From Pecten maximus (taxonomy: Eukaryota): a stretch of 64,000 nucleotides of DNA. The position numbers and the translations under genes are program-made. Below the pieces are notes generated by a model. The model did not search any database. It was not told the origin of the DNA and saw only the letters and a program-made list of their open reading frames with translations. How positions within the stretch are numbered: position 1 is the first letter of the stretch; each line of letters begins with the position of its first letter. The stretch is taken from positions 9,114,001 to 9,178,000 of the forward strand of contig NC_047022.1 in NCBI RefSeq assembly GCF_902652985.1, given 5' to 3'. Shown here piece by piece: positions 5,901 through 61,654 of this stretch.

Positions 5901-7980
5901 AATGTAATAAATATCTTTCTATGTTTTATTGATCTAAACTTCTCTGTGCCTCCAGTCTACACCAGTAAAGAATACGTAAAGTCACGTTGATACTTGTAAA
6001 TTAATATGTATCTCTTCATCTATATTTGAATCGCTTCATTCAATATACCAATATAAATTCCGAGAATGTCCCTAATTGATGGTTTCATTCTGACAAAAAG
6101 GGATCAGTGTGGCATGTGCAGGTCATATTCCATATGTATTGTGCACTGTATCTCGAAAAGTTTAAGGAATATGAGATACGAAATCTAATCAGCGCTTAGA
6201 GAATTACGCCGAGATGAAAGATTTCTTTTGTTTTGTTTTTTCGTGTAAAATGCGTTATATTAGTTTGTCTACTAAAATTTTTACTACAAACTACTGGATT
6301 TTTTCCTCTTTATTTCCGGGTACATTTCCACAAGAAACGCAATTAGAGAGACTTTTTTTTAAAATACGTACATGATAAGAATATATCACAAAACGTCATT
6401 TAAAACTATAATGATGTTCTTTTCATTTTCAACAGGATGACTGTCATCGTTTGTACTGCCCCGCCCATTCAGAACCAGTCGGTGGAGAATGTGTTGATAT
6501 ACAATATACAAGTGACGCCTTCATTCTAGATCTGCTGTTTGAAGCGAATATACATTTAAAAACTGGTAAAGCTATGCGTCAAATTTTTAACCGTGTATTA
6601 GGCAGCTTCGTGAAAGATTTCGGAAAGTATATAGGATCATTGTTAGCATATAATGATATACACCTAAGTCATAGGATCACTATACCGGGATTACTTTTGA
6701 ATACTGAGGAACAATGTTCTGTCATTCCTATATACATAAATGTCGAAGGAATAACACTAACTGGTAATACACTCGAATCTGAAAGGCCTTGGGTGGCGAG
6801 ATATTTCAACAACTACACCATAATGAATGAAGATGGCAGCGTTATGAGACATATAGTGGATGTACGAGATCTGTTATGTAAGACGAATGTTTCCGTTCGT
6901 AGCCCGTTATATCTCCAGGAGATGATTAACGTTGACAATGATTTACCCTGCTCAGCAGTCAAACTAGAGAATAGCGGAAACGAATCTGACAGTAAAGGCG
7001 AGACAAAGAACTCATTACTTTCTTACTTCCATCTTCAAGGAATTGTTATTTCCCAACTGGATGTTGTGTTCGCGAACGGAGACTATTTTTTGTGTATCGA
7101 TACGTTTTTATCGAAATATCAACTGAATTATCAACAGTACGATATTATGGACAGCTACAGAAGGTATATCAACACAGCATGTGCGTCTATATCAATAATC
7201 TGCATGGTGTATTGTCTGATTCAGTATTGTGCCATTCCAATTTTCCGAGACGGAAAGTCCGACATGTTAATTGTCCTGATATTGTTCTTACTTCTTGCCC
7301 AAACATGCTTCTTCATTTTTTCTCAGTCTCATCTTGAAATCCCAAGCTATGTTTGTGAGTGGGTTGGGCTAGTTCATCATTTTACATGGTTATGTGCATT
7401 TGTTTTCATGTTTCTCTGTCCATATCGCTTAAATACTGAGATAAGAGATCTTCGAACCTACAGCAGATCGGGAAGAAGGATGGCTACAGTAAAATACATG
7501 TTAGTTGGCATTTCTTTACCTTTAGTTGTCATTATCGGCATCAAAACTGCGAACTTACTTTTGGCACCTACAGAGAAATGGTATGGTGGACGTCTCTGTT
7601 TTATTTCACAAACATTCGTCATGCTATTTGGTTTCGTGGTCCCAGTATTTGTGATTTTGTGTGGAAACGTCATTTTGTTGATTTTCATTATTCATTATAT
7701 GACCTCTACATCTATTGCCGCCAATTCAAGCAGGTCTAACGTGATGGTATTCATCAAAATATCAACAGTCATGGGGTTTAGTTGGATTATCGGCATTGTG
7801 GCAACACTATCTCAGTCCGATGTACTTCTTTTAGTTTTCGAAGTCCTGTCTAATTTGCAGGGAGTTTTTATTACAATTTCTTTTTCGTGCTCAAGCCGTG
7901 TCAAGACATTTTACAAGGACTGTTTTCAGCAGATGAAAAGGAAGTCTTCAGCAGAACATGCTACGCCTTGCACTGACTGA
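2973..7980 (+). CDS. Somatomedin-B-domain adhesion/Methuselah-like 7TM receptor, copy 2; exons 2973-3935 and 6436-7980; ~835 aa
   Basis: Signal peptide MRLLLLYCLFWIIC and SMB-like motif C..CSCDWMCIYYDNCCYD. Donor GAG|gtaag at 3935/3936 and acceptor caacag|GAT at 6435/6436 are both phase 0, giving ...LSAVE-DDCHRLYCP.... Seven hydrophobic segments carry 7tm_2-type motifs (CEWVGLVHHFTWL, YGGRLCFIS, MGFSWIIG, SNLQGVFI). Stop TGA ends at 7980. Confidence 0.88.
5460..5910. mobile_element. Palindromic non-autonomous DNA element in the receptor intron
   Basis: ~155-bp near-perfect hairpin at 5467-5621 (atatctaacagtgtcttcagtaa...ttactgaagacactgttagatat) and a second palindrome at ~5803-5865 (aaaagtgatatttttcactagtgaa...ttcactagtgaaaaatatcactttt). 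Confidence 0.6.
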
Positions 7981-26835: not shown

Positions 26836-29800
26836 ATGGCGTGGACATTGATGGCGACAGTGACTGTTTTCCTAGGCCTCGTCTCTGGAACTGTAGAAGG
26901 TAAGTCTGTAAATCATATATGTATCAGTAACGTACGGCCCAGTATGGTATGAATGTGATGGGGTTTTCAAGCTCGTTTTCATTATTAAACTAGTTATATT
27001 TCACATTTGATTCTGTGAAATTCCCCCAGTATAAAATATGCTTACGGTTTGAAGGTTTTTTTTTGATAATTTAGAAACAAAGCCGTATTCACAATAACAT
27101 TACAAGCCTTACTATATCAATATAGGGGTTAAATGTCAGTAGCAATATATATATAAGTTTTTTGTTTTGCTTTTGTTTGTTTGTTTGTTTGTTGTTTTTT
27201 TTACTTAGTATGTGTTTTGTAACAATAACATTTCATTTCGGTTTTCTCTGTACTTACGTCTTTGTAATTTTCAAGTGTGTAAATGATACATGATTTAATT
27301 CTTTTCTTATGAATTAAACCAGATAGTAGACAAAAGGATTAAAAAAAATATTGTGTTTTAAAATAAATAAGCACTATTAGCCTGACAATCAGATTACCGT
27401 ATGAATGTATTATTTATACCAGTGTTATAAAGGGAAAGGTAAGTATGTCCTTATACTCCGAGACGAAGGTTACAGATTAAGTAAAGGTATTCTTTAACAT
27501 TAAGGTAACACTAAGTTCATTCGTCGAATTATCTAATTCTGTATCACGGTCAAATGAATTATCCTCCTGAATGTTAGAGTAATGTTTCACAGTAAATATC
27601 TTCAAAATTAAATAATATTCATTGTCTCCAACGTTTCAGTCAATAGGATGTGAACATGAACTCATATTCCACTATTATGGCAGACTGAATTAATGAACGG
27701 ATTGATAAAATATTTCCCTGCCCTGAGGGTGTGACAGATAAATCGCCATCCCGAGGGGTAATATTCTTGGCCGAGTGGTGATATTCTTGGCCGAGTGGTG
27801 ATATTCTTGGCCGAGCGGTGATATTCTTGGCCGAGTGGTGATATTCTTGGCCGAGTGGTGATATTCTTGGCCGAGTGGTGATATTCTTGGCCGAGTGGTG
27901 ATATTCTTGGCCGAGTGGTGATATTCTTGGCCGAGCGGTAATATTCTTGGCCGAGCGGTGATATTCTTGGCCGAGCGGTAATATTCTTGGCCGAGTGGTG
28001 ATATTCTTGGCCGAGCGGTGATATTCTTGGCCGAGCGGTAATATTCTTGGCCGAGTGGTGATATTCTTGGCCGAGCGGTAATATTCTTGGCCGAGCGGTA
28101 ATATTCTTGGCCGAGTGGTGATATTCTTGGCCGAGCGGTGATATTCTTGGCCGAGCGGTAATATTCTTGGCCGAGTGGTGATATTCTTGGCCGAGTGGTG
28201 ATATTCTTGGCCGAGTGGTGATATTCTTGGCCGAGCGGTAATATTCTTGGCCGAGCGGTGATATTCTTGGCCGAGCGGTAATATTCTTGGCCGAGTGGTG
28301 ATATTCTTGGCCGAGCGGTGATATTCTTGGCCGAGCGGTAATATTCTTGGCCGAGTGGTGATATTCTTGGCCGAGCGGTGATATTCTTGGCCGAGCGGTA
28401 ATATTCTTGACTGAGCGGTGATAGTCTCTGCCGAGCGGTGATATTCTTGACACGAGGGGTAATATTCTTGGCCGAGCGGTGATATTCTTGACACGAGGGG
28501 TAATATTCTTTGCCGAGCGGTGATATTCTTGGCCGAGCGGGGATATTCTTGGCCGAGCGGTAATATTCTTGGTCGAGGTGGGGTATTCTTTGCCGAGCGG
28601 TGATATTCTTGACCTAGCGGTGATATTCTTGACACGAGGGGCGATATTCGAGGCTTTGCCGAAAACACATCCCAATGGTGGGATATATCTATGTCACGTC
28701 CTCAAAAACCGTAACCCCATATTACACTGTACATTTATTTTCATAATTTACGCAATTGTGAACGATGAGAGAAAATAACATAAATGAATGAACGACGTAA
28801 AAACCGTTAATGAATGAAATGAGTGAATGAAAATAAAAAAGGAATAAATTTGGATAATCGATGAATTGAATCAAATGAGGATCGAATATGAAATGAATTC
28901 AGGTCATAAGTAGGTGCGCAGACCCCAAAACTAACATTTTTACAATGTGACTATTGCAAAGCACAAATACACATATTCTATGTCATAGAATGTGGTTTTG
29001 CTATACCCCTCATCGAAACTGAAAATAGCAAGATGCGTGTGTAGATTTATTGGCCTGGAATATTTTAAGGATATGTAAGATATATCCCTTGATGCCGTTA
29101 ACCAACTGATCAATTATTGGATTCTTTCACTTTTAAAGTATTTAGATTAATGCAAAAGATAATTGCTTCTTTATAATTGCAGGCCAAAGAATCGGAAATG
29201 GAAACGAAACGAAAGTCACACATCACGTGACGTCCAAGAATTTTCCACAGCCTTATCCCCGGAACTCCCATCAGCAATGGAACTTCAGTATGGAACACGG
29301 TCAGTGGAAAGTCATTTTCAGGACAGTGGACATCGAAAAGTCACGTCGCTGTCAAAAGGACTATCTTCACATTTACGACGGAGAAAACTCAAAACAGTGA
29401 GTCGTATTCAAGCGTATCGAAATAAAATATTTAGAAAGATTGTACAAAATACATGTGATGTATAGACATCCTTCAAAACACATACTGTAAACGTGGTTAT
29501 TTTCACGGGGTTAATTTCGCGATTTCGATATTTAAAATATACGCGTTGGGGGTAATTTTCGCGATCGATCCACCTTCGTTTGTAGTTCGAGATTATGCAA
29601 ATTGATATCAACATAATATGTGTGAGAGAAATTTTCGCGATCAAAAGGACTCCGGGTAATTAGCGTAAATTCCTCCCTCGCGTAAATTTCCACGTTTACA
29701 GTACGATACAATTCGATAATTTCATATTTTTGAGATATTTCTTTTCAAAAGAACGTTCAATACACGTGCAAATTTTAAAAGGTGCCAGAAGTATTTTTGA

Positions 29801-32800: not shown

Positions 32801-34888
32801 ATCGTTAAATATACACGAAAGCTTTATGACGTTATGTGATTGTTTCGTCATGCTACTAGTATATTAACCCCTTGACAAAATGCTAAGAGAAGTTGCCACC
32901 AAACGCCTTTAACACCTAGTACCTCAGGTTATAACACCCAGTTGGTGTAGGAATAAAAAAAATGGCGCCCGACCGCATCACTTTCCGCGAATATGACGTC
33001 ACGCGATTTTGCAATTCACAGGGAAATAGTTCTGCTATAGATTATCAATTTTAAAATGTTGTTTGTTTATGATTAACGTCAAATACACGGAAATTAAACG
33101 TTGAAAGAAATTAAAAGTGTTGGTTATTATCGTCATCTCCGCAGATTTTCTCCCGCTGAATGTTCAGTTATGTGAAAATTAAAAAAGGCGGTGTTTTTTG
33201 GTTGTTCAACTTAAAAAAATGAGAAAAAAAGTAAGGCAATTTAAATATAAGTATCAAACAGTAGCTTTAATGTTGTTATAGTCGATATGGCAGCAAGACA
33301 TATTTTGGGCAAATGAAGCCTGGAAACCCTATTTTTTAATGTTTTTTGACGTAGGCCGTTGTTTTTGGTAAACCTTAAAATATACCTTATCAAAGAACCA
33401 GAATTTATTTCATGTTGCAGCCCTGAGAAAATATTATGTGACAAACTTGAAAATATGGCAGACTATGAGACGACACATTCTTCCATTCGGATCGTTTTCC
33501 ATTCTGACGGAGCTGGCCAAGCCCAAGGATTCGACATGCAAGTTGTTCACATTCCAAATGAAGGTAAACAATTTTAGTTTATGATCTTGGATTCAAAACT
33601 ACATGTAATAATTATACATACTATATGATCAGATCATGATCACAAATACTATGGATCATATGACGGTTTCTACGTATTATGTCTATAGCATGTGCTCACT
33701 TTGTTACAAAATGTTTTTTGGGTTAAATCGAAAATGTCATTGGAATTCTTCATATAGTTCAGGAATCATTCTCATACGGCTATTCAAATAAAGAAATAGC
33801 ATTTTACCATTTGGAGTGGGACGACTGGTTCGCCCGTTGTCAGTATAATGTGACCGGGTGGGGTGTGATGCTGGGTGTCTTCGGCAGTATGCTTCACTGA
33901 GGTAGCACTTTAAATCGGCAAAAGTTCCGGCCTATCACAAGCAGACTTAACACGAACATAACGCAGCCTCCCAAAACACACATACGCACTCACCACACGC
34001 ATGCATGTCGCACGTAGGGAGGCCGTCCTTAAATGACCTTAGCTGTTAATAGGACGTTAAACAAAATAAACCAAACCAAAGCTTTTCTCATTGAATGTAA
34101 TAGCCATGTTTAATTATTACATGAGAACATTGGTATGATGTATTGTGATTTTAGATTACTTCACTCAACTTTTGCTGAAGAGACATGCCCAAGGTAAGGG
34201 AGACAACTCAATCAAGTGAAAAAGGTGAAGCTGCAATGTTTGAAAAAAAAAAAAAAAATGTGTAAGATAATAAATACTGCATGTGGTGACATTAAAGTTG
34301 TAATTTAAATTCGATGTTAATTTCATGTTTCCACGTAAATAAAAGAACTGAGATAGGCTGATCTTTCTTTCATTCATAAGTGAAACAATACAAAAAGTGC
34401 AACCTTCCGTCAGATATGAATTCATGATATTTCTATTTTTTATTTAGTATATTTTGGTCTATCATGACAGAATCAGTACTAAGACAAAACAAAACAACAA
34501 AAAACCCCAACCATTTCGATAAAACAATTATTTTTATTGTATTTGTCTTACCCGGTAACAAAATTGAAATTATTTCGTTCTAATTTCAGCTGCCAAGATA
34601 TCGTTCGTTCAAGTACATTCAAGAAATCCCCCAGTCCTGCACGTTCCTCTGACGGTTACATTAGCGATCTTGTTTTTAGTCCTGGTCGCCTTGGCCGTGT
34701 ATTTCGTCATTAGCCTTAGGCGGAAAACGAGTCAAGCACATGACACAATTTCGGCTATCAAACCACACCGACCTTCGACGACTTCAAGCATTAATTCCGG
34801 TCGGCGATACACGCGCCAACTTAGTGCGGACAGTGACAACTTATCCCATTTCATACCGGCGCCCAACAAACAGGAAGTTCGCAATTAA
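26836..34888 (+). CDS. Single-CUB-domain type I membrane protein; exons 26836-26899, 29183-29396, 33421-33563, 34155-34193, 34590-34888; ~252 aa
   Basis: Signal peptide MAWTLMATVTVFLGLVSG. CUB motifs VTSKNFPQPYPRNSHQQW, FRTVDIEKSRRCQKDYLHIYDG and LCD...IRIVFHSDGAGQAQGF. TM segment LTVTLAILFLVLVALAVYFVISL followed by RRK. All four introns are GT-AG with matching phases (1,2,1,1); total 759 nt. Confidence 0.87.
27757..28650. repeat. 20-bp minisatellite (atattcttggccgagyggtr) in intron 1 of the CUB gene
   Basis: About 44 units, in exact register at 27781-28400, degenerating to 20/21-bp variants at the right end. Confidence 0.97.
29483..29703. mobile_element. MITE with tactgtaaacgtg...cacgtttacagta terminal inverted repeats
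   Basis: TIRs end in TA (Tc1/mariner-like). A related copy lies at 48655-48876. Confidence 0.75.
30823..31041 (+). mobile_element. tRNA-derived SINE with V-domain-like core
   Basis: tRNA head (gcggtggttaag...gagttcgaaacc), core ggtggtttttctccgggtactccggctttcctccacc, tail cgtccttaaatgaccctggctgttaataggacgttaaac followed by (AAAC)n. Confidence 0.85.
31820..32003 (-). mobile_element. tRNA-derived V-type SINE (second family)
   Basis: Minus strand: tggcacagtggtaacaca...ggttcgattccc tRNA head, then gggttttccccgggtactccggttttctcccac core. Confidence 0.75.
32031..32351. mobile_element. Foldback/MITE-like element with ~37-bp TIRs
   Basis: atagaggtttcacaacgagtggttgctggatatag ... catatccaacaaccactcgttgtataacctctat, with nested internal inverted motifs. 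Confidence 0.7.
33808..34080 (+). mobile_element. 5'-truncated Meta-type SINE
   Basis: Matches the 3' half of 43515-44046; ends ...gtccttaaatgaccttagctgttaataggacgttaaacaaaataaacc(aaacc)n. Confidence 0.8.
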
Positions 34889-41329: not shown

Positions 41330-42230
41330 GTCCTCATGTGTAGTGCATTGTACTGCTGCTAAAGGAAGGAGGTTCCACTAGTGTGTTATTGTGTGTGGGG
41401 AAAATGAGTATTTGTATGTGTCCTTCGTAGCAGAGATATGTCTTAATGAGTGTGTGCATGTTTAATTTGTTGAATTTGGTTTGTGTTATGGGGTCCCATA
41501 TAGAAGAGCGGTATTCCAGTTTGGGTCTAACTAGTGCTTTGTTCGCAAGTTCTTTTATGTGTGGTGAGTTAATTTTAAGATTGCGTTTCAGAAAACCTAG
41601 TGATCTGTTTGCATTGGAGGTGATGTTGTTGATGTGTTTGTCCCATTTTACGTTGTTTTGTTGTGTGAGCCCTAAATGTTTGCTCGAGTCTTCTTGTGGG
41701 AGTGTGTGATTGTTAAGAGTGCAATCATGGTGTATTTTGGTTCGTTTAGGTGTTATATTTATGACATTGCATTTGCCTGGGTGAAACTTCATCATCCAAT
41801 CGATTTCCCATTGTGCTGCTGCGTGTAGATCTTCTTGTAGATTTAGTGTGTCTTTCTTGTTTTGAATTGCTTTGTATATGATCCTGTCGTCTGCGAATAG
41901 TCTGAGTGCACTGTGTTATAGACGAGGAAAAGGATAGGTCCCAAACAGGTTCCTTGAAGGACTCCTGATGATACGTGTATTGTGTCGGATGTTTTACCCT
42001 CAAGTACTACTGTTTTGTGTGCGTTGTGAGATAAAGTCTGTGACCCTTGCATGTGTGGTTCCTGTTATGCCGTAATATGCGAGTTTGTACTGCATTTAAC
42101 TGCGTTTATGTGGGATTTGTCAAAAGGTGTGGCAAAGTCCATGATGATGATGTCTATCTGTTTGTTATTCTTGTTGTTTTGTGCGAGGTCGTGTATAAAT
42201 GTGGCGAGCTGAGTTTCGCATGACCTATAC
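41330..42230 (-). mobile_element. Decayed LINE reverse-transcriptase fragment (CR1/L2-like clade)
   Basis: Broken-frame motifs SGVLQGTCLGPILFLVY, MKFHPGKCNVI, WDKHINNITSNANRSLGFLKRNL and LVRPKLEYRSSIWDP. Confidence 0.85.
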
Positions 42231-43124: not shown

Positions 43125-46100
43125 ACTAATGCCCCTTTACATACCTACCACTACACCTAATGCTCCTTTACATACCTACCACTGCACATAATGCTCATTT
43201 ACATACCTACCACTAAGCCTAATGCTCCTTTACATACCTACCACTACACGTAATACTCCTTTACATACCTACCACTACACCTAATGCTCCTTTACATAAC
43301 TACCACTAAACCTAATACTCCTTTACATACCTACCACTACACCTAATACTCCTTTACATAGCTACCACTAAACCTAATACTCCTTTACATACTTACCACT
43401 ACACCTAATACTCCTTTCCATAACTACCACTAAACCTAATACTCCTTTACATACCTACCACTACACCTAATACTCCTTTACATACCTACCACTACACCTA
43501 ATACTCCTTTACATGCAATGGGGGCAGCAGGTACAATTCTTACGCCCTACCTGCAAGGCAAGAGGCGACTAAATTTGGGATCTTATCTTTTCACTTCTTC
43601 CTTAACAACTTTCTTCTTCCTAGCGTCTCCCTTGACACTGCCTCACTTTTGGCCTTTAGTTGAGCGTTCGCCCCTGTGAGGAAGGCTTTGGGTTCTGTTC
43701 CCTAGCCGAGACATACCAGAGTCTTTAAAAATGGTAGTTGCTACTCCTGCTTAGCGCTCAGCATATTTGGAGTGGGACGACTGGTTTGCCCGTTGTCAGT
43801 ATAATGTGACCGGGTGGGGTGTGCTGCTGGGTGTCTTCGGCAGTATGCTTCAGTGAGGTAGCACTTTAAATCGGCAAAAACTCCGGCCTATCACAAGGAG
43901 ACTTTACACGAACATACCGCAGCCTCCCAAAACACACATACGCACTCACCACACACACGCATGTCGCACGCACGGGAGGCCGTCCTTAAATGACCTTAGA
44001 TGTTAATAGGACGCTAAACTAAATAAACCAAACCAAACCAAACCAAACTCCTTTACATACCTACCACTACACCTAATGCTCCTTTCCATACCTACCACTA
44101 AACCTAATACTCCTTTCCATACTTACCACTACACCTAATACTCCTTTACATACTTACCACTACACCTAATACTCCCTTCCATACCTACCACTAAACCTAA
44201 TGCTCCTTTCCATACCTACCACTACACCTAATACTCCTTTACATATCTACCACTACACCTAATGCTCCTTTACATACCTACCACTACACCTAATCCTCCT
44301 TTACCTACCTACCACTACACCTAATGCTCCTTTACATACCTACCACTACACCTAATACTCCTTTGCATACCTACCACTACACCTAATACTCCTTTACATA
44401 CCTACCACAAAACCTAATCCTCCTTTACATACCTACCACTACACCTAATGCTCCTTTGCATACCTACCACTACACCTAATACTCCTTTACATACCTACCA
44501 CTACACCTAATACTCCTTTACATACCTACCACTGCACCTAATGCTCCTTTCCATACCTACCACTACACCTAATGCTCCTTTACATATCTACCACTACACC
44601 TACCACTACACCTAATACTCCTTTACATATCTACCACTACACCTAATGCTCCTTTCCATACCTACCACTACACCTAATACTCCTTTACATATCTACCACT
44701 ACACATAATGCTCCTTTACATACCTACCACTACACCTAATACTCATTTACATACCTATCACTACACCTAATACTCCTTTACATACCTACCACTACACCTA
44801 ATGCTCCTTTCCATACCTACCACTACACCTAATACTCCTTTACATATCTACCACTACACATTATGTTCCTTTACATACCTACCACTACACATAATACTCC
44901 TTTACATACCTACCACTACACCTAATGCTCCTTTACATATCTACCACTACACCTACCACTACACCTAATACTCCTTTACATATCTACCACTACACCTAAT
45001 GCTCCTTTACATACCTACCACTACAATTAATACTCCTTTACATACCTACCACTACACCTAATACTCCTTTACATACCTACCACTACACCTAATACTCCTT
45101 TACATGCCTACCACTACACCTAATCCTCCTTTACCTACCTACCACTACACCTAATGCTCCTTTACATACCTACAACTACACCTAATGCTCCTTTACATAC
45201 CTACCACTACACCTAATACTCCTTTACATACCTACCACTACACCTAATGCTCCTTTACATACCTACCACTACACCTAATACTCCTTTACATACCTACCAC
45301 TACACCTAATACTCCTTTACATACCTACCAATACACCTAATACTCCTTTACATACCTACCACTACACCTAATGCTCCTTTACATACCTACCACTACACCT
45401 AATACTCCTTTACATACCTACCACTACACCTAATACTCCTTTACATACCTACCACTACACCTAATCCTCCTTTACATACCTACCACTACACCTAATGTTT
45501 CTTTCCATACTTACCACTACACCTAATGCTCCTTTACATACCTACCACTACACCTAATACTCCTTTCCATACTTACCACTACACCTAATGCTCCTTTACA
45601 TACCTACCACTACACCTAATGCTCCTTTACATACCTACCACTACACCTAATGCTCCTTTACATACCTACCACTACACCTAATGCTCCTTTCCATACCTAC
45701 CACTACACCTAATGCTCCTTTACATACCTACCACTACACCTAATACTCCTTTACATACTTACCACTAAACCTAATACTCCTTTACATACCTACCACTACA
45801 ATTAATGCTCCTTTACATACCTACCACTACACCTAATGCTCCTTTACATACCTACCACTACACCTAATGCTCCTTTACATACCTACCACTAAACCTAATA
45901 CTCCTTTACATACCTACCACTACACCTAATGCTCCTTTACATACCTACCACTACACCTAATGCTTCTTTCCATACTTACCACTACACCTAATACTCCTTT
46001 ACATACCTACCACTGCAACTAATGCTCCTTTACATACCTACCACTACACCTAATACTCCTTTACATACCTACCACTACACCTAATGCTTCTTTCCATACT

Positions 46101-49386: not shown

Positions 49387-50875
49387 TCAGATACTAGAAA
49401 ATGTCAGCATTTTCCTTGGGATCAGATTCCAGATTCTTGCTTTCCAGAGTATGGCCATAAAGTAGTCACCTGTCTTGAAATAGTACTGTCTTTTGGTTGT
49501 CTGGATAATTAGAACCCAGGAATCTGAAATAAAAGACAATTTTAAGTGTTTCGACAGACTAAGTTTTAAACATGGAACAACTTATATAAACCAATTCTTG
49601 CTTTTTCGATTTTTTCGTTTTACTGTAAATTCGTTCGCTTTGACATGAAAAACCTATCGAAACTGAATCGAAAAATATATCCTTGTTTCGAGATATAAGA
49701 CGTCAAACTTTATTTCTATCTCTGCCTGACATTACCAAATAATTACAGAAGCCATTCGTGGCAATCATCAGATTAAGAGAGGTGACATCAGAGTCGCTTA
49801 CTAATGTGGACGAGACATATGTGTGGTACTAAATAATTGGCTGTTTTGGGAGGCTGTGGGTTTTTTGCTTGTCTTCATGTCATGATAGCGCGCAACTGTT
49901 TCAAATGTTACAACTCTACCTCACTGAGGCAACTCGCCGAAGACACCCCGCAAAGCAAACTAGTCGTCATACTCCCCAGAATGCTGAGCATTTAGCAAGA
50001 GTGCCGTCTTACAAACACTGGTAGGTGACTCTAACAAGGAACGTGATTGCACCCAAACACTCACCTAAATGCTTAAGTAAGAGCAGTATCAACGGGAAAT
50101 AAGCAAACAGAAACTTGTAGGGAAAGATGAGAAAAGAAAACTGACCTCAATTTAGTCGCCTTTAAAAACCGACGATGTGAGAGCAGATGCGATGCTAATG
50201 TTGTAAGTCAAACATAGGAAATCAATTAAAAGCACACTGGCTTTTAAGGTATCAATATTTGATTTTTATGACAATTTGCAAGTGATCTACTGTTCTGTGT
50301 CAGATGCCAAGATTTTCATTTCCGTTCTTGTTGATATAGCTCTAGCAATGAAGACATTTCATATCAAATCAAGACTAATGTCAAATATTATGCAACAATA
50401 TAACCCGATGAGTCATGTGGCGGATGAACGATTCCTAAATCCCATTGGTCGATGCTACATGCGAATGGGACCCAAACCAAATAAAGAAAACATGAAAGGC
50501 CACATGTGTAAACTTGGATATCGGTGCCGAATGGGATCATTTCCTACTGTCCCAATGCAGCGCGATACAGCAAGACGGTCCTGCATTTCCAGTTTTTTTC
50601 AAACATAAAAGACGCCGGGGAAAGGAAACCCCAGGTCCGTTAGCGTCGCCGAAGACAGGCAAACGTCTACATAATGTCATTGCACATCCCAATAAACTTA
50701 CCTTGTACTAAATCCATATCGACACGAAGGACACGAGAAATGGGACATTTTCTCTTCGGTGACGTTCTGTTTCTGTCAATATCTCTCCATTTTAACTGCG
50801 GTACATTGTTCTCAATGCAGACTCTCAACTCAACCAGGTGGTCCCAACCGTTTGAGGTCTCCTTCACAAATCTTC
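49387..50875 (-). CDS. Last two PKS exons, encoding a PH-like domain
   Basis: 50875-50702 + 49523-49387 splice in phase 1 to give GRFVKETSNGWDHLVELRV...LKW...PKRKCPISRVLRV...DSWVLIIQTTKRQYYFKTGDYFMAILWKARIWNLI...*. Confidence 0.75.
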
Positions 50876-53800
50876 CTATAAAAAGTGAATAGGTAACATG
50901 ATAAGAATAGACTATAATAGTTGAAAATAACAAATTTCAATAGTGGTAAAGTTGAACATATAAAACAGGATGACGTTTCATGGCAAACATGTAGGAAGTG
51001 TAAAGAGAAATATGATATTAAGAAGGAAACTATTGTGAAATAACAGAAAATATCTCAAGTTCAGGTGCATCAGACGGACAATACTTGGGGTACAGCAAAC
51101 AAAACTATCTTCCAAAAAGTAGAATGTCTTTTTGTTGGCATGGTAGTTAAAAGTAAACCTGAAATTGTAGGGATCTTGTAGAGACTATGTTTTGTTTCCT
51201 TATTTTCATTTAACACCCATTTCAACTAAACATACATATAAACATATTTCGCATTCATGCTTTTTAGTAATTTTTGGCGTTTTCTGTAATGGTCCGAAGC
51301 ACATTAGCTCCAATATTCTTTTTATATATGCAAACTTGAACGAATTGTTTATCTGTTAATATGAAATATCAGTTGTTTTCAGGAAAAAAAAAAAAACATG
51401 ACCCGATACCCTGCATGCATAGTATGTATTTACCTGATAACAGTTGTGGATCCACTCCGTCCACAGCCTCGGCTGGAGAGCACCGTAAGGGAATGTTGTC
51501 AAGACTTATATCAGAATTCAAGGCATTTACACAGGCCAGTAACAGAAGATCTTCAAGCATATTGTTTGCTGTAGACAAGCTTACGATGGTTGGGTCGTAA
51601 CTTAATACGAAGTCCATCGATCCTGTCTGGGTATCCGTGACGATATTTAAAGCTGTTTCAATGTGGTTCAGAAAGCCAGTGTTATATCCGGAGTGTTTCA
51701 TAGTATGGTTTGGGTACTTCTCGTGTTTGAATGTTTGATTTGATACATATCTGACATTAAAGAAATGGCGAAAAGCGTTGGCCGCATCAGGATTGTTCTG
51801 TTTGATGAGTAGAAAAGGGTACAGACTGTGCGTGCTTGCAAGAGTCATTTGACTTGCACAGATTCTGATACAATCTCCAAGTGTAGCGGGTGTATCGCTA
51901 AACGCTGTTACGATCGGGATATAGTTGGTACCAAGAAATACCATGCTGGTAAACTCTGGTAAGTGTCGTCGCATGTCCACTGTCAGTACAACGGGAGTGA
52001 CAGGTTGACGCGTCATCTTGTGGAGAAGAATTTGGTAGAGACAGAAGACTAGGGTAGGTCCTGTTACACCTTTGTCGTTCTGATTAATTTTGTCTACTAA
52101 CTCTCTTGGAAGGCGAATCGATATCTGTTCCGTCTTTCCAGACAGAGGAACCAATGACTCAGACTTGACGAGAGACGGCACAGTATGAATTCTATCAAGC
52201 TCCCCTTTCCAGAACTCCTGGAGATAAAACCTCTCACCATCAAGACGTTCTTCCATCAGATATGTTACATCAGGGACATCTGCAGTTTCTAAGTTGGTAC
52301 CCGTTCCCATCAGGTATGTCTGTAAGTCCGCCTGGAACTGCGGTATCAGCGTGAAGAAGCTTTGTAAGTCAAATGTGATGTGGCTCATGACAAACCTGAT
52401 GTGATGTTTCCTACCTGTATTGCCATAAATCAACCGCAACGGCGGGTCTGTGGTGATGTCGAATGTGCAGTACTTGACCATATCCTCGTCTGTCCAACCC
52501 TTTTTAATCACAACGGAATCAACCACTCGGAAATCAACTTGGGCATCCTCTGGATCCAAAACATGCTTTTTGATACCGAATCTAAATCGTTCCTTAGTAG
52601 GATGGTACAAAGTCCTAAGTTCTTTATTTCTGATTGTTGCCCATCGCAGGACAGTACGCCAAAGTTCGATATTCGATAGACCGGTTCCCAGTTTGAAATC
52701 TATACTGAACCAAAGACTAGAGTCAACGGGAGAGTCTTCATGCATGTCGATGTAGAATTTTTGCATCCATGTTGGTGATTCACGTATGTCCTCCTTTATT
52801 TCCGAATTGTCATTAGTATTATTATCGATGATGTTTGAATGTACAAAGTCGATAATCATGCCGATAGTATAGTTAGGAGACAGGATGTAAGCAACCGGAA
52901 GTCGACAGCCTGTAGCCTCATGTACAATCTGGATCAATTCCACAGATTTTTGGGACTCCATACCTAGTTCAAGAAGGTTTTGATTTTCTTCCAAGTAATT
53001 TTCATCTAAAGATAACACCGTAGAGAAACACTTTAATAATAAATTAACAAGTGTCTTCCTCTGTTGCTCATGTGATGTCGATTTGAATTCAGCAATGTTA
53101 AGAACAGTGTTAATTTCGCGCCTTCGAATTGCCGACTGATTGAAAATGGTGCTCTCTTCTTGCTTGTCAACGATAGAGGTCCGTATAATAGAAGGGTTTT
53201 TACCGACTACGCTCCAGTCAAACAAACCAAATATGGATTGACATGGATTTCGAGTCAGGCAATCCATAAGGCATTCTTTGATTTTGTCTGTTTCAAGCAG
53301 ATAATGCCCCTGTGCTTCTAGGTTGTTTCTGATGTTCTCATCACTCGCCATTCCCACCGCCAATGCGCCCCAGTTGATCGTCTGTCCAGGTAGGTTGTTG
53401 GCTCTTCTGTAAAAGGCAAAGGCATCCATGAATGAGTTCGCAGCTCCATAATTAGTCTGTCCAGCATTTCCAAAGACAGATGTTGTTGAGGAATGCATGA
53501 CAAAGAAATCCAATTTTAATTCTTTAGAGATAAGGTGTAGGTTCCAGGATCCAAGAACTTTTGGCGCTAAGACTTCTTTGAACTTTTCAATTGTCATGGT
53601 TTCAATACGAGCATCTCTTAGCACTCCAGCTCCCTGGAATATACCTTTGACTGGATGATTTGGAAATTTTAACTTGATTGCAGAAAATACATTTTCCACA
53701 TCAACAAAATTCGCAACATTGCAAGTCATTGGCACAATTTTGTACTTGTGTATATCCATTGCATTTTGGAGTTGATCTTTCATCTGTGGATTGACACCTC

Positions 53801-56800
53801 TCCTTGATAGTGGTACTACAATGCCAGCACCTCTGTGGCCCAGCCATTTGACGATGTCCCATCCAAGGCCTGTCAACCCACCAACAACAACATACGTTGC
53901 ATTACTATGGAAAAGTGTGTCACCTTTCGCTTTTATGGCCACATCCGTGACATCCCCGCATCTTTTGTCAGGGAGATTGATGGTTTTAAGCTGTAATGAC
54001 TTTACTGCATTTGTCATAAGGTCATGTCGTTTTTGTCGTCTTTGCAGCCATCTCGTTACTTTTGGAAATGTTTTAGCAACATTATTTTCCTCAAACACTT
54101 TCGTCTTTGCAATGGTTTGTACTTTTATTCGTTTTGTACTCAGTTGAATTTTCTTATTTGATAGACAGAGTATCACATCATCAAAGCCTACAATGGTATT
54201 CCCCGGCTGTAAAATGCAGTCTATTTTCTGTTGAGGATAAGTTTGCAACAATACAAACACGCAACCCTTTTGTTGATCGTCCTTAATTATGGAGGCGAAT
54301 GATGTAACTCGAACTTTGCTTTGCCTAACAGTCTCAAGCATGTCACAGAGAAGGAAAACTTCCCAATCTTCAGCCGGGTCTGCTTCAGTCACAACACAAA
54401 CTGTAGATCTGCGCCTAATTATCTCAGTGATGGCCCAAATCAACATGGACTTTATGATTAGACCGGGTTTGTACATTGGCAAGCTTGCTATGTCGCATAC
54501 ACATTGTTTTGGAACGCAGATTCTATTGGAAACTCTCGATGGGTAACATGCCACAACACGGCTGGATCTTTGCGCGCTAAGGATGGTGCCTTGAAACTCT
54601 AACGCAATGACTGGATATCCCCCGCTGTATTCTGACCAAAGTGATTTGCTGATACTCGTTTCCAACTCTGTTAGTCGAAAATCTGTTGGCGAGTGAACAC
54701 ATATTTCCTCAACCAAAAGTATGACCTCATTATTTCGAAGTTCACAGTTTCGATCAACAGGTGTCAGAAATGGGCTCTCAATGCTGTCCCAAGTAATAGA
54801 CTGTAGCTCAAGGTCGCTGTTTGTGTCAGTGGATATGACTCTTTTTTCGCTCTGTAATCCATTCTGTGTCCTTTGCTGTAGAAAGTTACTATGCAACTGT
54901 CCATCAACGATGATAAATTCCGTAAATGAAGGAGGGTTGGACGTAAGAACTTCAATAGTTTTGTGCAATATCGCTAATTGCGAGGCAATTGTAGGCTGCA
55001 CATCTATCAGAATCATTCGACATTTCGTTCCTTCCTGTCTTAAAGATCTAGCAAAACCCCATAATTCAGCACCCAATACATTTTTATCAGTAACTGGTTC
55101 AGGAACGTTTGCTTGTGTGTTCTCAGTAATTACTATCACTGGCTTTTCCAAGTCTTTCACCCTTTGAATGGTGTTAAGGAAGGCGTTACAATTTTTGCAA
55201 ACACGACTAAACAGATCGTTTCTACATTCTCTTTGATTGAACGAATCTGGGACAAATATCAAAACATCCGTCTGTTGTAAATCACTGGAGGTTCCCAATA
55301 CAGCGTTGTCTTCCAAATCAAGCAGACTAAATGATTTTCCTATTGGGTATAAACTTCTCAACATTTCGCATATGTTGCTATCGTCGAAGCAGATTGTAAC
55401 GCTTTCCTGCTCTTTATCGTTCACGTTGTTGCTAATCGCAGGGACATCTTCAACCGCCCAGGTAATCTGATAAGCAAGAGCGTTTACTGTTAAGCCATCG
55501 TTCATAATCTTGTGTTCGATTTCCTTAACTTCAGCTAGTACCAGACCGTCAGGTCTAGTTAGAATGATGTTGGTGATAATCCTGTCATAGACTTTCTGTA
55601 TTACTTGTGTATAACATATCATTTGCTTCTCAAGTCTTCGTAATAAGGATACGCTGCCGAGGCGAATCGGATAAATCTTGTTTAAAGATTTATTGTGAAC
55701 GGAAAAGAAATCCAGAGCACTGGAGTGGAGCATGGCATCTAGAACAGCAGGATGGAAGGCAGTCTGGTTAAGTTGTCTTGTTACATCCTCAGTAAGTTGG
55801 ATATATCCAGTATATTCATCTTTGCCGAATGTAACCGATTCCAAAACCTGGACTGGAGCGCCGTATTTGTAGCCATGTTCAGCTAGTTTGCTGTAAATTG
55901 TATCTCGTTCCATTTGTTTCCCAGTAGGTATGCACAATTCATTAATAGGAACGATGTGGTTTTGTGCACGGTTTTTGTTTGTGATAGATCCTTTGACTAC
56001 GGTCGTCGCATTTTTTAAAATAGAGAAAGATACCCTGATAACACCATTACCCTTTTCTGTAATATCAGATATCAAATCGAGACGAAAGGGCTTTCCTTTG
56101 AACAAGGGAATTGATTTGATAATTTCGTACTCTACATGCATGCTTTCAGCTGATATGCCCATGGTACTCATTCCAAGCTCATATGCCACCTCCGCGTAAA
56201 CAGCGCCTGGAATGATGATGGCGTTGTCTATAGCATGATTATATACAAACGGCGTTGCAGTTGGACTAAAGTTGACGTCAAATTTCCCTGCTGCCTCTTG
56301 TTTTGTGATCATAAGGCATTGGTATGAAGAATCATCAACCAATCCTTGTTTCCTGAGGAAGCGGTAGTCTGATTCAATCATCAAGCGTTTGCCATCAAAC
56401 TGGTAGCTGGGAAGGTCTGTCGGGTTGTCTTTATCTACAATATTTTCCCATTTCGGATTCAGTCCAAGCGCATACAAATGTCCAAGAGTATTTCGCACTT
56501 GTGAAGATCCAGTCTCAAATTTCATGGAAGGAAACGCTGCGACATCTTCATCGTTAAATATATCCCGTAAATGCGCTTTCAAAACAGGCTGGGGACCAAT
56601 TTCTAGGAATATGGTAGACTTCTCATCTGCTGATACCTGAAGTGCCTGATGGAACAAAACTGGTCTAGCGACGTTTTGTTGCCAATACTCCGGAGTGCCG
56701 AAGTCGATTGCAATCTTTCCCGTTACAGTGGAGAATATAGGTATGTTCGGTGTATCGGTTTCTATCCCTTCCAAAGCTTCTTTAATGCGCTTGGCTGAGT

Positions 56801-59800
56801 CTTCTACCTTGTAACTGTGGTAAGCGCAATTTGTTTTCAAATCACTGAAATACGGTATTTCATTACTTTTTTCAGCATCTTCTCTTATGATTGTTTTTGC
56901 TTCTTTCACTTTCAGATCGTCACCAGTTAGTGTGCATGCGACGGGACTGCTGTATACTGCGATCCCGACCTGACCAACCTTGTCACATATCTTGGCTACG
57001 TTTGTGGTATCAGCATTCCTAACCACAAGCATTCTCCCTCCCAATACCTCTGCCAATAATTTTGATCTGTAGTAGATAACTTTAACTGCATCATGCAGGG
57101 ACAGTGCCCCACTACAGTAGGCAGCGGCAACCTCTCCAACAGACTGACCGACGGTCGCATCAGGGCATATTCCCCAATGCTTCCAGAGGTTTGACAGTCC
57201 TACTTGGCAGGCAAAAATGCCAATATGACCAATGAATGGGTCTACCATATCTGCACCTTTTCGTATTTTGTCTGTTATTGACCAGCCTGTAAGTGGCATC
57301 AAATGTATATCTATACTTTGCAGAGTGTCAGCGAAAACATGAAAGTCACTTAAAAGTTCCTTGCCCATATGTGTCCATGCAGTTCCAACACCACAGAACA
57401 CGTACACTAATCTGTAGTTCCTGCCTGGTGTAATATTGCTGCTTGATATCGATTCAATTTCATAAGAGCAACTTTTTGTGAGGTCAGCAATTGTTGACAC
57501 GATGAACATCTTTCGATATCTATGGTGATCCCGTCTACACGAAGCGGTGTAGGCTAATTGCTTCAAACTGTATGGTTCGTTTGTCAATCTTGTTAGCAAG
57601 TTCCTCATTGTTTTTTCTAGGCAGATCTGAGATTTAGCTGAAACAGGAACACATATCATCTTCTCAGCATTTTCCGATCTAGACCTAGATTTGTCTGGTA
57701 TCTCAATCCACTGCCTTACAAAAGCGTGGCTGTTTGTGCCACCAAATCCAAAACAGTTGATGCAAGCAGCTCTGGAGCCATCTTGTAGAGCAGGCCATCG
57801 GTACACGGATGCTGGCACATCGAGGGCATAACCCACAAAGTCTATCTTGGGATTCCTTGGAAGAGAATGGAGGGAGGGTACAATTTTCTGATGCTTCATC
57901 ATAAGAAGAGTTTTGATAAGACTTGCAACCCCAGCTCCGGATTCGAGATGTCCAATGTTAGTTTTAACTGATCCAATAAATCGTTGCCCATACAGTATCG
58001 GATGATCTTTGAAGAAGCGACCAAGACTGTTGACTTCAACAGGGTCACCAATGGGTGTACCAGTTCCTATAAAAATGGGAAAAGAGAGGCACCTAATATT
58101 TCCACCGATGAATTTATATAAAATTACCGTTATAAGGATTTAATATATTAATTGACAGTATTATTAAATTCATAATATATCATAATACATGTATTTATAT
58201 AGCAATCACCGCAATATCTTATAAAATACAATTATTAAATGCAAGATACTGTAGACGGAGACATTTAGGTGACGGCAAATTATGACGGTTTCTCATGATG
58301 GTTTTATTTTGGTCTATATTTACCGTTTTCAAAAAACCCGTGTCAAAGTTTGGCTTGTTTCGATATTCATACTACATTACCGATGTCAAATCAAATACTC
58401 TTCATAGTTGAAAGGATCATAAGGAGTTTTACCAAAATTGTGAATTTCCTGACCTTGGGGTCTCACTTTTGCTCCTGGGAAGGGGGTAACCTTAATTTTA
58501 GTTTACATAGGGAAATCACATTTTTAACTATGATTTGTTTGATTTTTATTGGAATTAACTCTAACTTTGTTAACGTCATCGGCATGGGATGACAGCTTGA
58601 TGGTATGCACTTTTGGCTGACCTCCTTGGTTGATGGGCGGGGCCAAAAAGTGTCAACTAAAATATTTCAAAACTCGTTAAGGCCCTCTTGTTTTCAGGTG
58701 CAGATTTTTTCCAATTCAAGAACTATTCCCCGACACAGCCTAGATGTATTCTCGTCAAAAGTCGTCACCCGACCACATTCCTGTTATTCAACGGAATACC
58801 CATTAAGTTTAATACGTATCAATTGCCTATAGATATTGAAATAAGAACAACCCCAATCACGTGATTTAATATGAACCACCTGGTGATGAAATTCAGAAAT
58901 CTGAAATACGTATATTTAGACTCTAATAATTTCGATGAAACTGGGTATAGAGAAGATTTAAAAAAAAAATCTAACCTTTGCGTGTTTGGACCCAACTATT
59001 AGTCCTTTCGATAGTCAGTAAGGGTCAATATGTTCGTACCTTATATACCATATAAGCAAATTCCAATTGATTTCAAAGGAAATAAAAAAGGATGTTTCAA
59101 AATCTGATTGCGCTATATTAACTTCAGATTTTTTTTTACTTCGTCCTCATTGTGGGATTGGGCGATTGGTTCGCCCGTTGTCAGTATAATGTGACTGGGT
59201 GAGGTGTCTTCAGCAGTATACTTTAACTGAAGTAGCACTAAGATTTTGGCGCCAGTTCCACGTTATCACAAGTAGACAATGACGACCATACCACAGCCCC
59301 CCCCCCCCCCCCCCCCCCCCCCAAAAAAAACAACCCCACACATGATGTTGTGAGTGCGTCTCCTTGAGAAGGTCCGGAACTTTTTGTCGATTTATAGTTC
59401 TACCTCACTGAAGCATACTATGACGTAAGTTTTTTTTTCCTAGCAATTTTTGGTTTTTAGCAGAACGTTTTATAATTTCAGTCAATTTGACCTCTTTTTG
59501 CCTCTTCTATCACGCCCGTGGAATGGGGACCATATAATACAAACATTGTGGTTAGCCTTTGGTTATGGAAAGTTTCTGCGGGACACAATTTTATTAGTAG
59601 TTTGTTGAAAGAAGTCGAAAATGTAACTTGTTTACGGACAGACAATGGTGTTGACCATGGATTAAGGATTATAATAATTATATTAATTAGAAATTTCATA
59701 TTAACATTAATACATTTAAGATAGAAATCTAAATTTCTGATTTTTTAAAAGTGCAATCAAATTTTAAATGATAAATTAATATTTGCCTACCGTGTGCTTC

Positions 59801-61654
59801 TATGTACTGGACATGGCTTGGGTCAATGTTGTAGGAATGGTGATATATATCACTAAGAAGCTTCCTCTGTTGGACCTCAGATGGCGCAGTGATGGGTTTT
59901 GCGGTCTTGCCATCTTGGTTACAGCCCGTACGGATAGTCGCCCATATATGTCTGTTATTTTCAAGAGCCTATGAAAACGTGTTACATAATTACATGTTTG
60001 AATCTGGTTTTAATCTTAAATATAAGAATTTATAAGTTTGATATAAAGTTTATTCCGTCGCTGGAAATAATTTGTTTTAGTTTCGACCGCCGTCACTTTA
60101 AAATGTTTATTTTGGTATCGACCAATCAGACCAGTGCTTCCCAGTAGCCATTCTAAAGTTTTAAGCCATCAGGCTTCGTCAAAGTGACGCGATCCAAGCA
60201 ATTTGATTTAGAAAAGGCTATGGATTTTTTTTTAACACACAGTGGGGAAAATAAGAGCTGGCGCCTTTAGTATTGACTTCTTCATCAGCTTAATAAATAT
60301 TACTTTGAATTTCAAAATGGCGCCATAATGACAAACCCAACGGCGTAATAAATTAGTTCCTAATGACAGGTGAAATACATTTCCATACACTTACACTTTT
60401 GTGATGAGTTTAACAGTTAATTGGTTTACTTAATTGGTATTTGCTTATAAACAATTATCAAACCAAGTCGTTCAATTGGGTTTACTCAGACAGAACCCTA
60501 TGCACATGTCCCCTACCAGATATGAACGGTATGGCTGAATGTATCGAAATAACAAAAATGCTTTATGTTAGCACTAATTACTTATTGACTGAATTCCATA
60601 ATAGACCTTGGGATGTCTCGGCTACGAGACAGAACCCAAAGCTTTTGCTTGCTGGGAAAAACGCATAACTAAAAGCCAAAATTGAGACAGTGTCTTCGGA
60701 GATGCTAGGAAGTACACGTTATTTTTAAAGAAAGAAGTACAGAAAAAAAGTTAAGATCCTAAACTGTGTCGCCTCTTTAAAAGCATCCAATGGGATAGAA
60801 GGTACAATTCTTAAGCCCTAACTAGAGGTAATCCATGTGCACAGACCACTTACATCACTGAGCCGCTCAAGTATGACAATGCCGCATCCCTCTCCTCTTG
60901 CGTAACCATCAGCGTTAGCCGAGAAGGCTTGACACTGTCCGGTAGGTGACGCCATCCGGGCCTTCGTCAGAGTGACAAACATATCTGGATATAGAATACT
61001 GTTGACTCCGCCACAAATCGCCATGGATGACTCACCTAGGTAAATATGATATACCTAGTTAAAACGAATAAACAATAAATTGATGTTTTAATTTAGATCG
61101 GAAACAATTATTCCATTATTATTGTGAGCCTAATATTTTGATGATTTGAAACACATTTCTGAAATCTGATTTTGGTTTTTGAGACATCATACACTGTTAT
61201 CGCAAGTGCATGGAAGAAGAAGAAGAAGAAGAAGAAGAAGAAGAAGAAGAAGAAATATCAACGTTCGTTTTGGGTAGACGATTACTTACCTATTATCAAA
61301 GACTGTGTTGCCAGGTTGATTGCCACGAGAGAAGAGGAACATGCGGTATCTATGGTAAGGGAAGGGCCAAGCAGATTGTAGTTGAAGGACACTCGAGCTG
61401 AAATGATGCTGGTGGCGTCTCCAGTCACGGTGTAATTTGTCAACAGTGAATAGTCCCCGTCTTTGGCCGACTTTGCGTCACTGTTCATTGCGCCAATATA
61501 CACGCTCGTTGGCGAGCCGTCCAAATCTGCTTTCGTGATCCCGCCATCTTCCAATGCCATGTGAGTACATTCGAGGACATATCGTTGCTGGGGGTCCATT
61601 TCGGAAGCCTCCTTTTCCGAAATTTCGAAAAATTCGTTGTCCCAGACATCATGT
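49387..61654 (-). CDS. Animal iterative type I polyketide synthase, KS-AT-DH-psiER-KR-ACP-C-PH-like; exons 61654-61290, 61035-60854, 59968-59791, 58066-51434, 50875-50702, 49523-49387; 5' exon(s) outside the window; ~2555 aa in the window
   Basis: KS: MDPQQR, DTACSSS, EAH/GTGT, KTNIGHLE. AT: GQSVGE, AYHS. DH: YNHAIDNAIIIPG, HPAVLD. KR: GGLTGLG, GAGVLRD, GQTNYGAAN. ACP: LGMES. C domain: SHITFD. All introns are GT-AG with consistent phases (1,0,1,1,1). TGA at 49389-49387. Confidence 0.93.
49770..50165 (-). mobile_element. Degenerate Meta-type SINE in the last PKS intron
   Basis: Reverse-complement similarity to 43515-44046 (ctacctcactga, gccgaagacacc, atgctgagc, aatttagtcgcc). Confidence 0.6.
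51434..58066 (-). CDS. PKS 6633-nt exon (KS C-terminus through AT, DH, psiER, KR, ACP and C domain)
   Basis: Contains nearly all of the 2177-aa ORF. Acceptor tttatag|GA completes the HG/TGT motif; donor TCA G|gtaaat at 51434/51433. Confidence 0.93.
61213..61254. repeat. (GAA)n microsatellite in a PKS intron
   Basis: About 14 perfect GAA units; the source of the poly-K and poly-E spurious ORFs. Confidence 0.95.

Follow-up and report, generated by a model that had tools for sequence, protein, structure and literature searches.

Animal-encoded polyketide synthases (PKSs) are few, and for almost none of them is the product or the mechanism of its release known. One such enzyme is encoded on the minus strand of the stretch of DNA analyzed here (the window), 64,000 nucleotides (nt) of the great scallop Pecten maximus that span positions 9,114,001 to 9,178,000 of contig C8 in our genome set G000. 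The locus raises two questions: how does a PKS with no thioesterase (TE) part with its chain, and what is the segment of ~100 amino acids (aa) at its very end? The protein is a single-module reducing type I PKS and, having a single module, presumably an iterative one. Its ketosynthase (KS), acyltransferase (AT), dehydratase (DH), ketoreductase (KR), and acyl carrier protein (ACP) domains are followed by a condensation (C) domain of the nonribosomal peptide synthetase (NRPS) type, predicted to be complete, and by a tail that structural modeling and weak sequence matches describe as pleckstrin homology (PH)-like. The best overall explanation, which we hold with fair but far from full confidence, is that of a C-domain-bearing mollusc PKS that releases its chain onto an acceptor through the C domain and is targeted by the PH-like domain.

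The large minus-strand open reading frame (ORF) of the locus, 2177 codons at positions 57902 to 51372, finds its best database match in P. maximus LOC117332102 (2603 aa, 99% identity), behind which come paralogs and orthologs of 2600 to 2680 aa from P. maximus, Mizuhopecten, Ylistrum, and Argopecten. When the LOC117332102 protein is mapped on the window and every junction is checked, the ORF lies within a giant fifth exon, six exons fall inside the window, and each intron is of the GT-AG type. The first coding exon (aa 1 to 70, MEEVEEIAIVGIGCRFPG...) is located outside, at G000:C8:9183012-9183221, 5.0 to 5.2 kb past the window end; the locus in the window is LOC117332102 minus that exon. Introns are few, and the N-terminal ones are all in the KS region. 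A preliminary description of this DNA had proposed a single spliced minus-strand gene, as the GT-AG introns and the 99% match now confirm, with junctions 51434/50875 and 50702/49523, at both of which the splice signals and phases are correct. It had also taken position 61654 as the limit of the gene, which proves to be an internal boundary, the first base of exon 2. The window was searched exon by exon, with database paralogs serving as proxies for the full protein. The exons and the related features of the gene model are the following.

61654-61290, minus strand: exon 2, N-terminal part of KS, in phase 1 from its start and preceded by AG
61035-60854, minus strand: exon 3, middle of the KS domain
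59968-59791, minus strand: exon 4, KS, ending at ...YIEAHG, the first half of the EAHGTGT His motif
58066-51434, minus strand: exon 5 (6633 nt), C-terminal part of KS, linker, AT, DH, structural region, KR, ACP, and C domain
50875-50702, minus strand: exon 6, encoding the tail (PH-like) in its first half (FxKxTxxGWxH ... W)
49523-49390, with the stop codon at 49389-49387, minus strand: exon 7, the last exon as conserved in the family, encoding the tail in its second half (WxLxIQTxKRxYxFK...W...RI)
50030-49963, to 49960 with the stop codon, minus strand: alternative last exon chosen in the NCBI model, within intron 6 and encoding 23 aa and a stop
51369-51371, minus strand: stop codon read upon retention of intron 5, giving a product without the tail

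With the conserved last exon, the predicted product would be about 2625 aa long. Exon 5 is open over 2210 codons and all motifs are intact, on which grounds a pseudogene is rejected.

A Pfam scan of the large ORF recognized the C-terminal extension of KS, Acyl_transf_1, PS-DH, KR, PP-binding, and Condensation, and it found neither a TE nor an enoylreductase (ER) in that ORF. For the full protein (P0001), PF00109 and PF02801 are on record. The domains and their motifs are arranged as follows.

61350-61330, minus strand: KS motif DTACSSS with the active-site Cys (motif reading)
Exons 4 and 5, minus strand: KS motif EAHGTGT, split by intron 4 into EAHG and TGT (motif reading)
57953-57942, minus strand: KS second His motif, GHLE (motif reading)
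56517-57407, minus strand: AT domain (PF00698, E 1.7e-43), with GQSVGE at 57132-57149
55512-56282, minus strand: DH domain (PF14765 and PF21089), with HAIDNAIIIPG at 56205-56237 and LDAMLH (DxxxH) at 55725-55742
53898-55505, minus strand: region between DH and KR, 536 aa (Pfam scan)
53361-53900, minus strand: KR domain (PF08659, E 9.9e-53), with GGLTGLG at 53862-53882, LRD at 53613-53621, and NYGAAN, containing the catalytic Tyr, at 53436-53453
52842-53042, minus strand: ACP (PF00550, 27.2 bits versus a cutoff of 20.8), with LGMESQ, containing the phosphopantetheine Ser, at 52950-52964
51471-52784, minus strand: NRPS-type C domain, both lobes (PF00668 and AlphaFold2 fold match), with SHITFD at 52385-52368

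The KS catalytic residues, Cys-His-His, are all present (DTACSSS, EAHGTGT, and GHLE). In the AT motif GQSVGE, Gln stands where His is usual, and this is the case family-wide. The DH domain keeps its catalytic pattern, H(x8)P plus DxxxH, and the KR domain has its Lys, Ser, and Tyr, along with an LRD motif that is B-type-like. The 536-aa region between DH and KR matched 0 Pfam families at E≤10 and thus has neither an ER nor a methyltransferase (MT) match. A degenerate ER was considered for this region and left no trace by Pfam; the stretch looks like the usual structural region, with no ER remnant visible. The preliminary description had listed an intact KS triad with AT, DH, KR, and ACP and with no TE, all of which motif reading and the Pfam scan bear out. 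Among the Pfam families that it expected, those for KS, AT, PS-DH, KR, PP-binding, and Condensation were matched, and PH stayed under its gathering score.

As to lineage, a direct KS search was dominated by multi-KS bacterial PKSs and was uninformative on the animal tree; the bit scores of the piece comprising the KS C terminus and AT serve here as a rough stand-in for a KS tree. This piece scores 180 to 228 bits against true PKSs (Dictyostelium Pks16, DEBS, CurL, and MAS), compared with ~106 bits against animal fatty acid synthase (FAS) and 103 to 132 bits against the FAS-like EcPKS1/2. On this rough measure, the gene is better placed in the “canonical animal PKS” lineage than with FAS or the animal FAS-like PKSs (AFPKs).

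The C domain carries the first part of our argument. PF00668 matches it with 55.6 bits, versus a cutoff of 30.6 (E 4.9e-15), over profile positions 110 to 426 of 456, so that the condensation domain reported earlier behind the ACP is backed by a Pfam match above the cutoff. The ACP-C piece of the window itself, as modeled with AlphaFold (mean predicted local distance difference test score [pLDDT] of 87.4; predicted template modeling score [pTM] of 0.76), has the two-lobed fold resembling chloramphenicol acetyltransferase (CAT-like). It matches solved NRPS C domains with Z scores of 33 to 35 over ~400 to 420 residues, and 35 entries have a Z score of at least 26; for 7kvw_A, the Z score is 34.9, with a root mean square deviation of 2.9 Å and 412 residues aligned. 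The same model matches the CON domain of MokA (6ad3; Z score, 32.4), SgcC5 (Z score, 29.0), the CT domain of TqaA (5dij; Z score, 27.5), the chain-release C domain of the enacyloxin system (6cgo; Z score, 25.3), and PapA2 and PapA5 (Z scores, 23 to 25). Judging from this model, the C domain is a complete one of the NRPS type. Its active-site motif, SHITFDL, keeps the second (catalytic) His and the Asp of HHxxxDG, with the first His and the Gly replaced. This His and Asp are invariant between Pecten paralogs that are only 25% identical. Across 33 family members, the Asp is found in 33/33 and the second His in 20/33; members with (S/N)HxxxD come from pectinids, Mytilus, Pinctada, and Patella, and the whole pectinid clade keeps the catalytic His and Asp. 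On the strength of these residues, C-domain catalysis in the scallop enzyme is likely. A search with the C-domain piece alone found no short relatives (269 to 856 aa).

The tail is encoded by the two small 3′ exons, which are easily missed in annotation. In the whole P. maximus genome, both exons occur only downstream of PKS-C paralogs (7 to 8 of them), in the same order and with the same phases, and a distant paralog on C10 has the tail intron at the same position. Compared with the paralogs, exon 7 shows a ratio of nonsynonymous to synonymous substitution rates (dN/dS) of 0.15 to 0.5 at dS of 0.6 to 0.9, which points to purifying selection; the dN/dS values for exon 6 are 0.5 to 0.67. The splice sites, phases, and family conservation show that the two further in-phase exons of the preliminary description are real, and conservation argues that the last junction, 50702/49523, is in use. 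A hidden Markov model of the tail matches PKS-C proteins of Mytilus, Sinanodonta, and Argopecten and the Pecten C10 paralog, as well as Mercenaria upon iteration. The tail-bearing groups are scallops, mussels, unionids, and one venerid clam, and their common pattern is FxKxTxxGWxH...W...L...RxYxFK.

Several lines of evidence point to a PH-like fold. In the AlphaFold model of a 900-aa Mercenaria homolog (P0101), a disordered linker precedes the tail, which consists of seven strands (residues 783 to 866) and a C-terminal helix (residues 869 to 882), with pLDDT values of 82 to 93. A profile of exon 7 made from this gene and five paralogs had only one match in the PDB, with the SBF1 PH domain (1v5u; E 0.012), in an alignment that spans strands 6 and 7 and the helix, the Trp included; the exon 6 profile had no meaningful PDB match. 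The Pfam PH profile matched the tail of the ortholog P0005 with an E value of 0.014 and 16.4 bits versus a gathering score of 25.1. The protein-language-model neighbors of two tails that are only 25% identical are PH families. Fold searches with the model of the 900-aa homolog returned C-domain matches only. The two tail-exon products, submitted to complex prediction as separate chains, gave a score of 0.08, which has no bearing either way. The PH-like pattern noticed at the outset has thereby gained the modeled fold of a homolog and some weak PH matches in sequence, all under the curated thresholds. The membrane docking that was proposed along with it is unsupported, since inspection of the alignments shows no canonical K-Xn-(K/R)-X-R motif for phosphoinositides; the tail has one conserved Lys in strand 1 and one Lys/Arg in strand 2 and no (K/R)-x-R.

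These features suggest the following mechanism. On the ACP, the KS, AT, KR, and DH domains would assemble an acyl chain that is partly reduced and unsaturated (polyene-like). The C domain, with its SHxxxD motif, would then transfer this chain to an amine or hydroxyl group of a separate acceptor, as in the enacyloxin system, and the PH-like domain would be a targeting or partner-binding module. The protein has no TE or reductase, and on these grounds the C domain is proposed to release the chain; by analogy with the known off-loading domains, acyl transfer to an amine or alcohol is plausible. A trans-acting ER partner is possible.

Several observations weigh against this scheme. In a clade with H[SGKA]xxxD that includes Mercenaria and Sinanodonta, the second, catalytic His is replaced, so that C-domain catalysis is not universally conserved in the family, and the CON domain of MokA is among the best structural matches (Z scores, 31.4 to 32.4). 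As for the tail, its PH sequence matches are under the curated thresholds, neither of the window's two tail exons has a Pfam match when scanned singly, the fold evidence comes from a clam homolog and not from the window's joined tail, and the last exon of the NCBI model would truncate the PH-like domain. The replaced His, which affects a large part of the family, and the MokA match would suit a C domain that is a noncatalytic scaffold, like the CON domains of LovB and MokA, shaping the programming or recruiting a trans partner (e.g., a trans-ER), with the chain set free by another enzyme or spontaneously; the absence of A or T domains after the C domain and of the first His and the Gly of HHxxxDG in this gene would fit such a role as well. 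We nevertheless consider it unlikely, because the catalytic His and Asp are kept in this gene, in the pectinid clade, and in the 25%-identical paralogs, the C domain has its full length and its two lobes, and Pfam finds no other releasing domain in the protein. Alternatively, the C domain could work as a fungal terminal C domain (CT) of the SHxxxD type and release the product by intramolecular cyclization to a lactone or lactam. It does have the SHxxxD motif, a match to the TqaA CT domain, and a terminal position directly after the carrier protein, but standard elongating or releasing C domains match better (Z scores of 33 to 35, versus 27.5 for CT), and an ER-less polyene-type chain has few internal nucleophiles, which makes cyclization an improbable outcome here. 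Release onto a separate acceptor is the alternative that we prefer.

The presence of the tail in the mature product can be questioned, too. The NCBI model of this gene (P0001) shares junction 51434/50875 and exon 6 with the structure given above and then ends in a different last exon (ESPTSV...), not in the conserved one. The main product of this paralog might then have no PH-like tail, its mRNA terminating either with the NCBI exon (50030-49963) or at the stop codon at 51369 and exon 7 being a relic. However, exon 7 is intact, its splice acceptor is good and in the correct phase, and its dN/dS against the paralogs is in the range given above, whereas the NCBI exon lacks an equivalent in the introns of the paralogs and abuts a dispersed repeat; in addition, most models of paralogs and orthologs (six other family models) end in the exon 7 sequence. 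A tail-less main product therefore seems to us a minor contender, and we retain the tailed protein as the likely product of the gene.

Two side observations concern this end of the gene. The dispersed repeat, ~110 bp long, is present in three copies with 71% identity, at 49842-49952, 33869-33978, and 43825-43934, and the copy in intron 6 lies directly 3′ of the stop codon of the NCBI alternative last exon. The public models P0001, P0006, P0008, P0010, P0011, and P0012 have unrelated sequence instead of the conserved last exon; it seems that the small 3′ exon is often misannotated in this family.

Contamination with bacterial DNA, or a recent horizontal transfer, has been another concern, given that the KS domain is 38 to 46% identical to those of bacterial modular PKSs and that, outside the molluscs, the closest C domains belong to bacterial NRPSs. 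We assign this explanation practically no probability. The gene has six GT-AG introns and a GC content of ~35 to 43%, as in the surroundings, and lies on a chromosome scaffold of 46 Mb; its family occupies five P. maximus chromosomes and has orthologs in many bivalves and a limpet; and the mollusc C domains form one clade, separate from the bacterial ones. Bacterial contamination is effectively refuted by the introns, chromosome context, GC content, and family spread. The animal origin asserted in the preliminary description is in agreement with the introns, the scaffold, the paralogs, and the scallop orthologs. A horizontal transfer long ago, at the base of the family, is possible.

The P. 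maximus genome has 9 to 10 PKS-C loci on five chromosomes: the window gene on C8, its closest paralog on C19, four loci on C12, one with an in-frame stop on C17, and two distant ones on C10. By sequence, the window gene is one of at least nine paralogs that encode PKSs of the mollusc “canonical animal PKS” lineage, in its subtype with a C domain. A quick tree of C domains, rooted at the midpoint, places all mollusc C domains in one clade with the bacterial NRPS domains outside, and the PH-tailed members are found in three of its subclades, from which it follows that the tail is probably ancestral in bivalves. Genes with a patched domain (PF02460) are located ~13 to 35 kb from both C10 paralogs (G000:C10:18021125-18031230 and G000:C10:9222041-9223203), and no patched-domain gene was found near the C8, C12, C17, or C19 copies. 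The C10 paralog at 18.05 Mb has a C domain and the PH-like tail. In two other PKS-C paralogs, at G000:C17:27722493-27724046 and G000:C12:32005322-32006788, an in-frame TAA interrupts the C domain; these two may be pseudogenes or assembly errors.

In this family, which has been conserved among bivalves and has expanded in scallops, a condensation domain in place of a TE suggests release by acyl transfer, and the fusion of a PH-like domain to a PKS/NRPS-type megasynthase would, if true, mean that localization or partner binding is built into the synthase. If the products were polyene amides or esters, this would bear on shell and pearl pigmentation and on the chemical defense of molluscs. In a bolder version, which we regard as doubtful, scallop shells and pearls would owe their polyene-type pigments to the bivalve PKS-C-PH enzymes. 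A conjugated polyenoyl chain, made by the ER-less PKS, would be attached by the C domain to a lipid or matrix acceptor through an amide or ester linkage. The PH-like domain would connect the synthase with a route of export at the membrane, ancestrally perhaps together with the neighboring patched-domain transporter. The hints in this direction are circumstantial: the absence of an ER, the patched genes next to the C10 paralogs, the expression of the clam PKS MpES in the mantle (PMC9894158), and, as a lead only, the upregulation of PKS genes in the colored nacre mantle of a unionid (PMC12652611).

Elsewhere in the window, two near-identical ORFs with multiple hydrophobic segments (receptor-like) are found in tandem on the plus strand, with a Cys-rich ORF with a signal-like start between them (22-1116, 2967-3989, and 6451-7980). 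Long minisatellite arrays at 19534-22029, 27640-28675, and 44001-46000 have open frames in several phases. The base skew at the minisatellites is strong, with a GC skew of +0.60 at 20 to 22 kb and of -0.91 at 44 to 46 kb. An isolated 153-aa ORF on the minus strand, at 41334-41795, is perhaps a retroelement fragment.

Among the known systems, the proposed chemistry is comparable to that of the enacyloxin C domain (6cgo) and of SgcC5 and PapA5/PapA2, free-standing C enzymes that form esters or amides; in all of these, the same C fold off-loads a carrier-bound acyl or polyketide chain to an external hydroxyl or amine. They come from bacteria, and their HHxxxDG motif is complete. In the enacyloxin system, the C domain is a protein of its own, whereas here it is fused after the PKS, and none of these enzymes has a PH-like domain. 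LovB, MokA (6ad3), and the fungal PKS-NRPS hybrids share with the scallop enzyme an iterative reducing PKS without a working ER that is followed by a C domain. The fungal enzymes have an MT and a pseudo-ER and then either adenylation-thiolation-reductase (A-T-R) domains or a truncated, noncondensing CON domain; in contrast, the scallop enzyme has no MT, and its C domain is full length with the catalytic His. The tail is comparable to the PH domains (PF00169, e.g., SBF1 1v5u) in its size of ~100 aa and, in the homolog model, in its seven strands and C-terminal helix with a conserved Trp, and its sequence matches to them are weak yet specific, but it differs from them in scoring under the Pfam gathering score, in having no canonical phosphoinositide motif, and in being fused to a megasynthase.

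The single-module KS-AT-DH-KR-ACP core is the same as in SpPks1 of the sea urchin, MuPKS of the budgerigar, EcPKS1/2 of the sacoglossan, and animal FAS. To our knowledge, none of these has been described with a terminal C domain and a PH-like domain. The gene stands apart from animal FAS and AFPKs in that its KS C terminus and AT are nearer to PKSs in bit scores and that no TE was found.

Within molluscs, Yue et al. (PNAS, 2022; PMC9894158) described MpES (MZ666239), a type I PKS of the mantle of the clam Meretrix petechialis, which has the same KS-AT-DH-KR-ACP core and a similar transcript size (~10 kb); a C domain is not mentioned in that paper. The homologs of MpES neighbor a patched-domain (PTCHD3) gene, as the C10 paralogs do and the window gene does not. 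This shared synteny suggests that MpES belongs here, and by synteny and layout it is probably a relative of the family. MpES has been linked to erythromycin (PMC9894158), which in our assessment is not an obvious product of a single-module, ER-less layout.

The nearest precedent is the work of Lin et al. (2024; Nat Commun 15:236, PMC10764717), who found that a mollusc PKS clade has members with C domains, noted that the introns of mollusc PKSs are few and concentrated at the N terminus, and listed Pecten and Mizuhopecten among the holders of this clade. The window gene matches their description in both its KS...ACP-C layout and its few N-terminal introns: the clade has the same KS-AT-DH-KR-ACP core with an NRPS-type C domain and the same intron pattern. 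That report gives the architecture and no product, and neither PH nor pleckstrin is mentioned in its text or in the supplements searched (PMC10764717); our literature search turned up no publication that connects PKSs with PH domains. The layout that the preliminary description did not recognize is accordingly published for molluscs as far as KS...ACP-C is concerned (PMC10764717), and it is the PH-like tail for which we found no description. All told, the gene appears to be a member of a known, uncharacterized family with a newly recognized conserved C-terminal domain.

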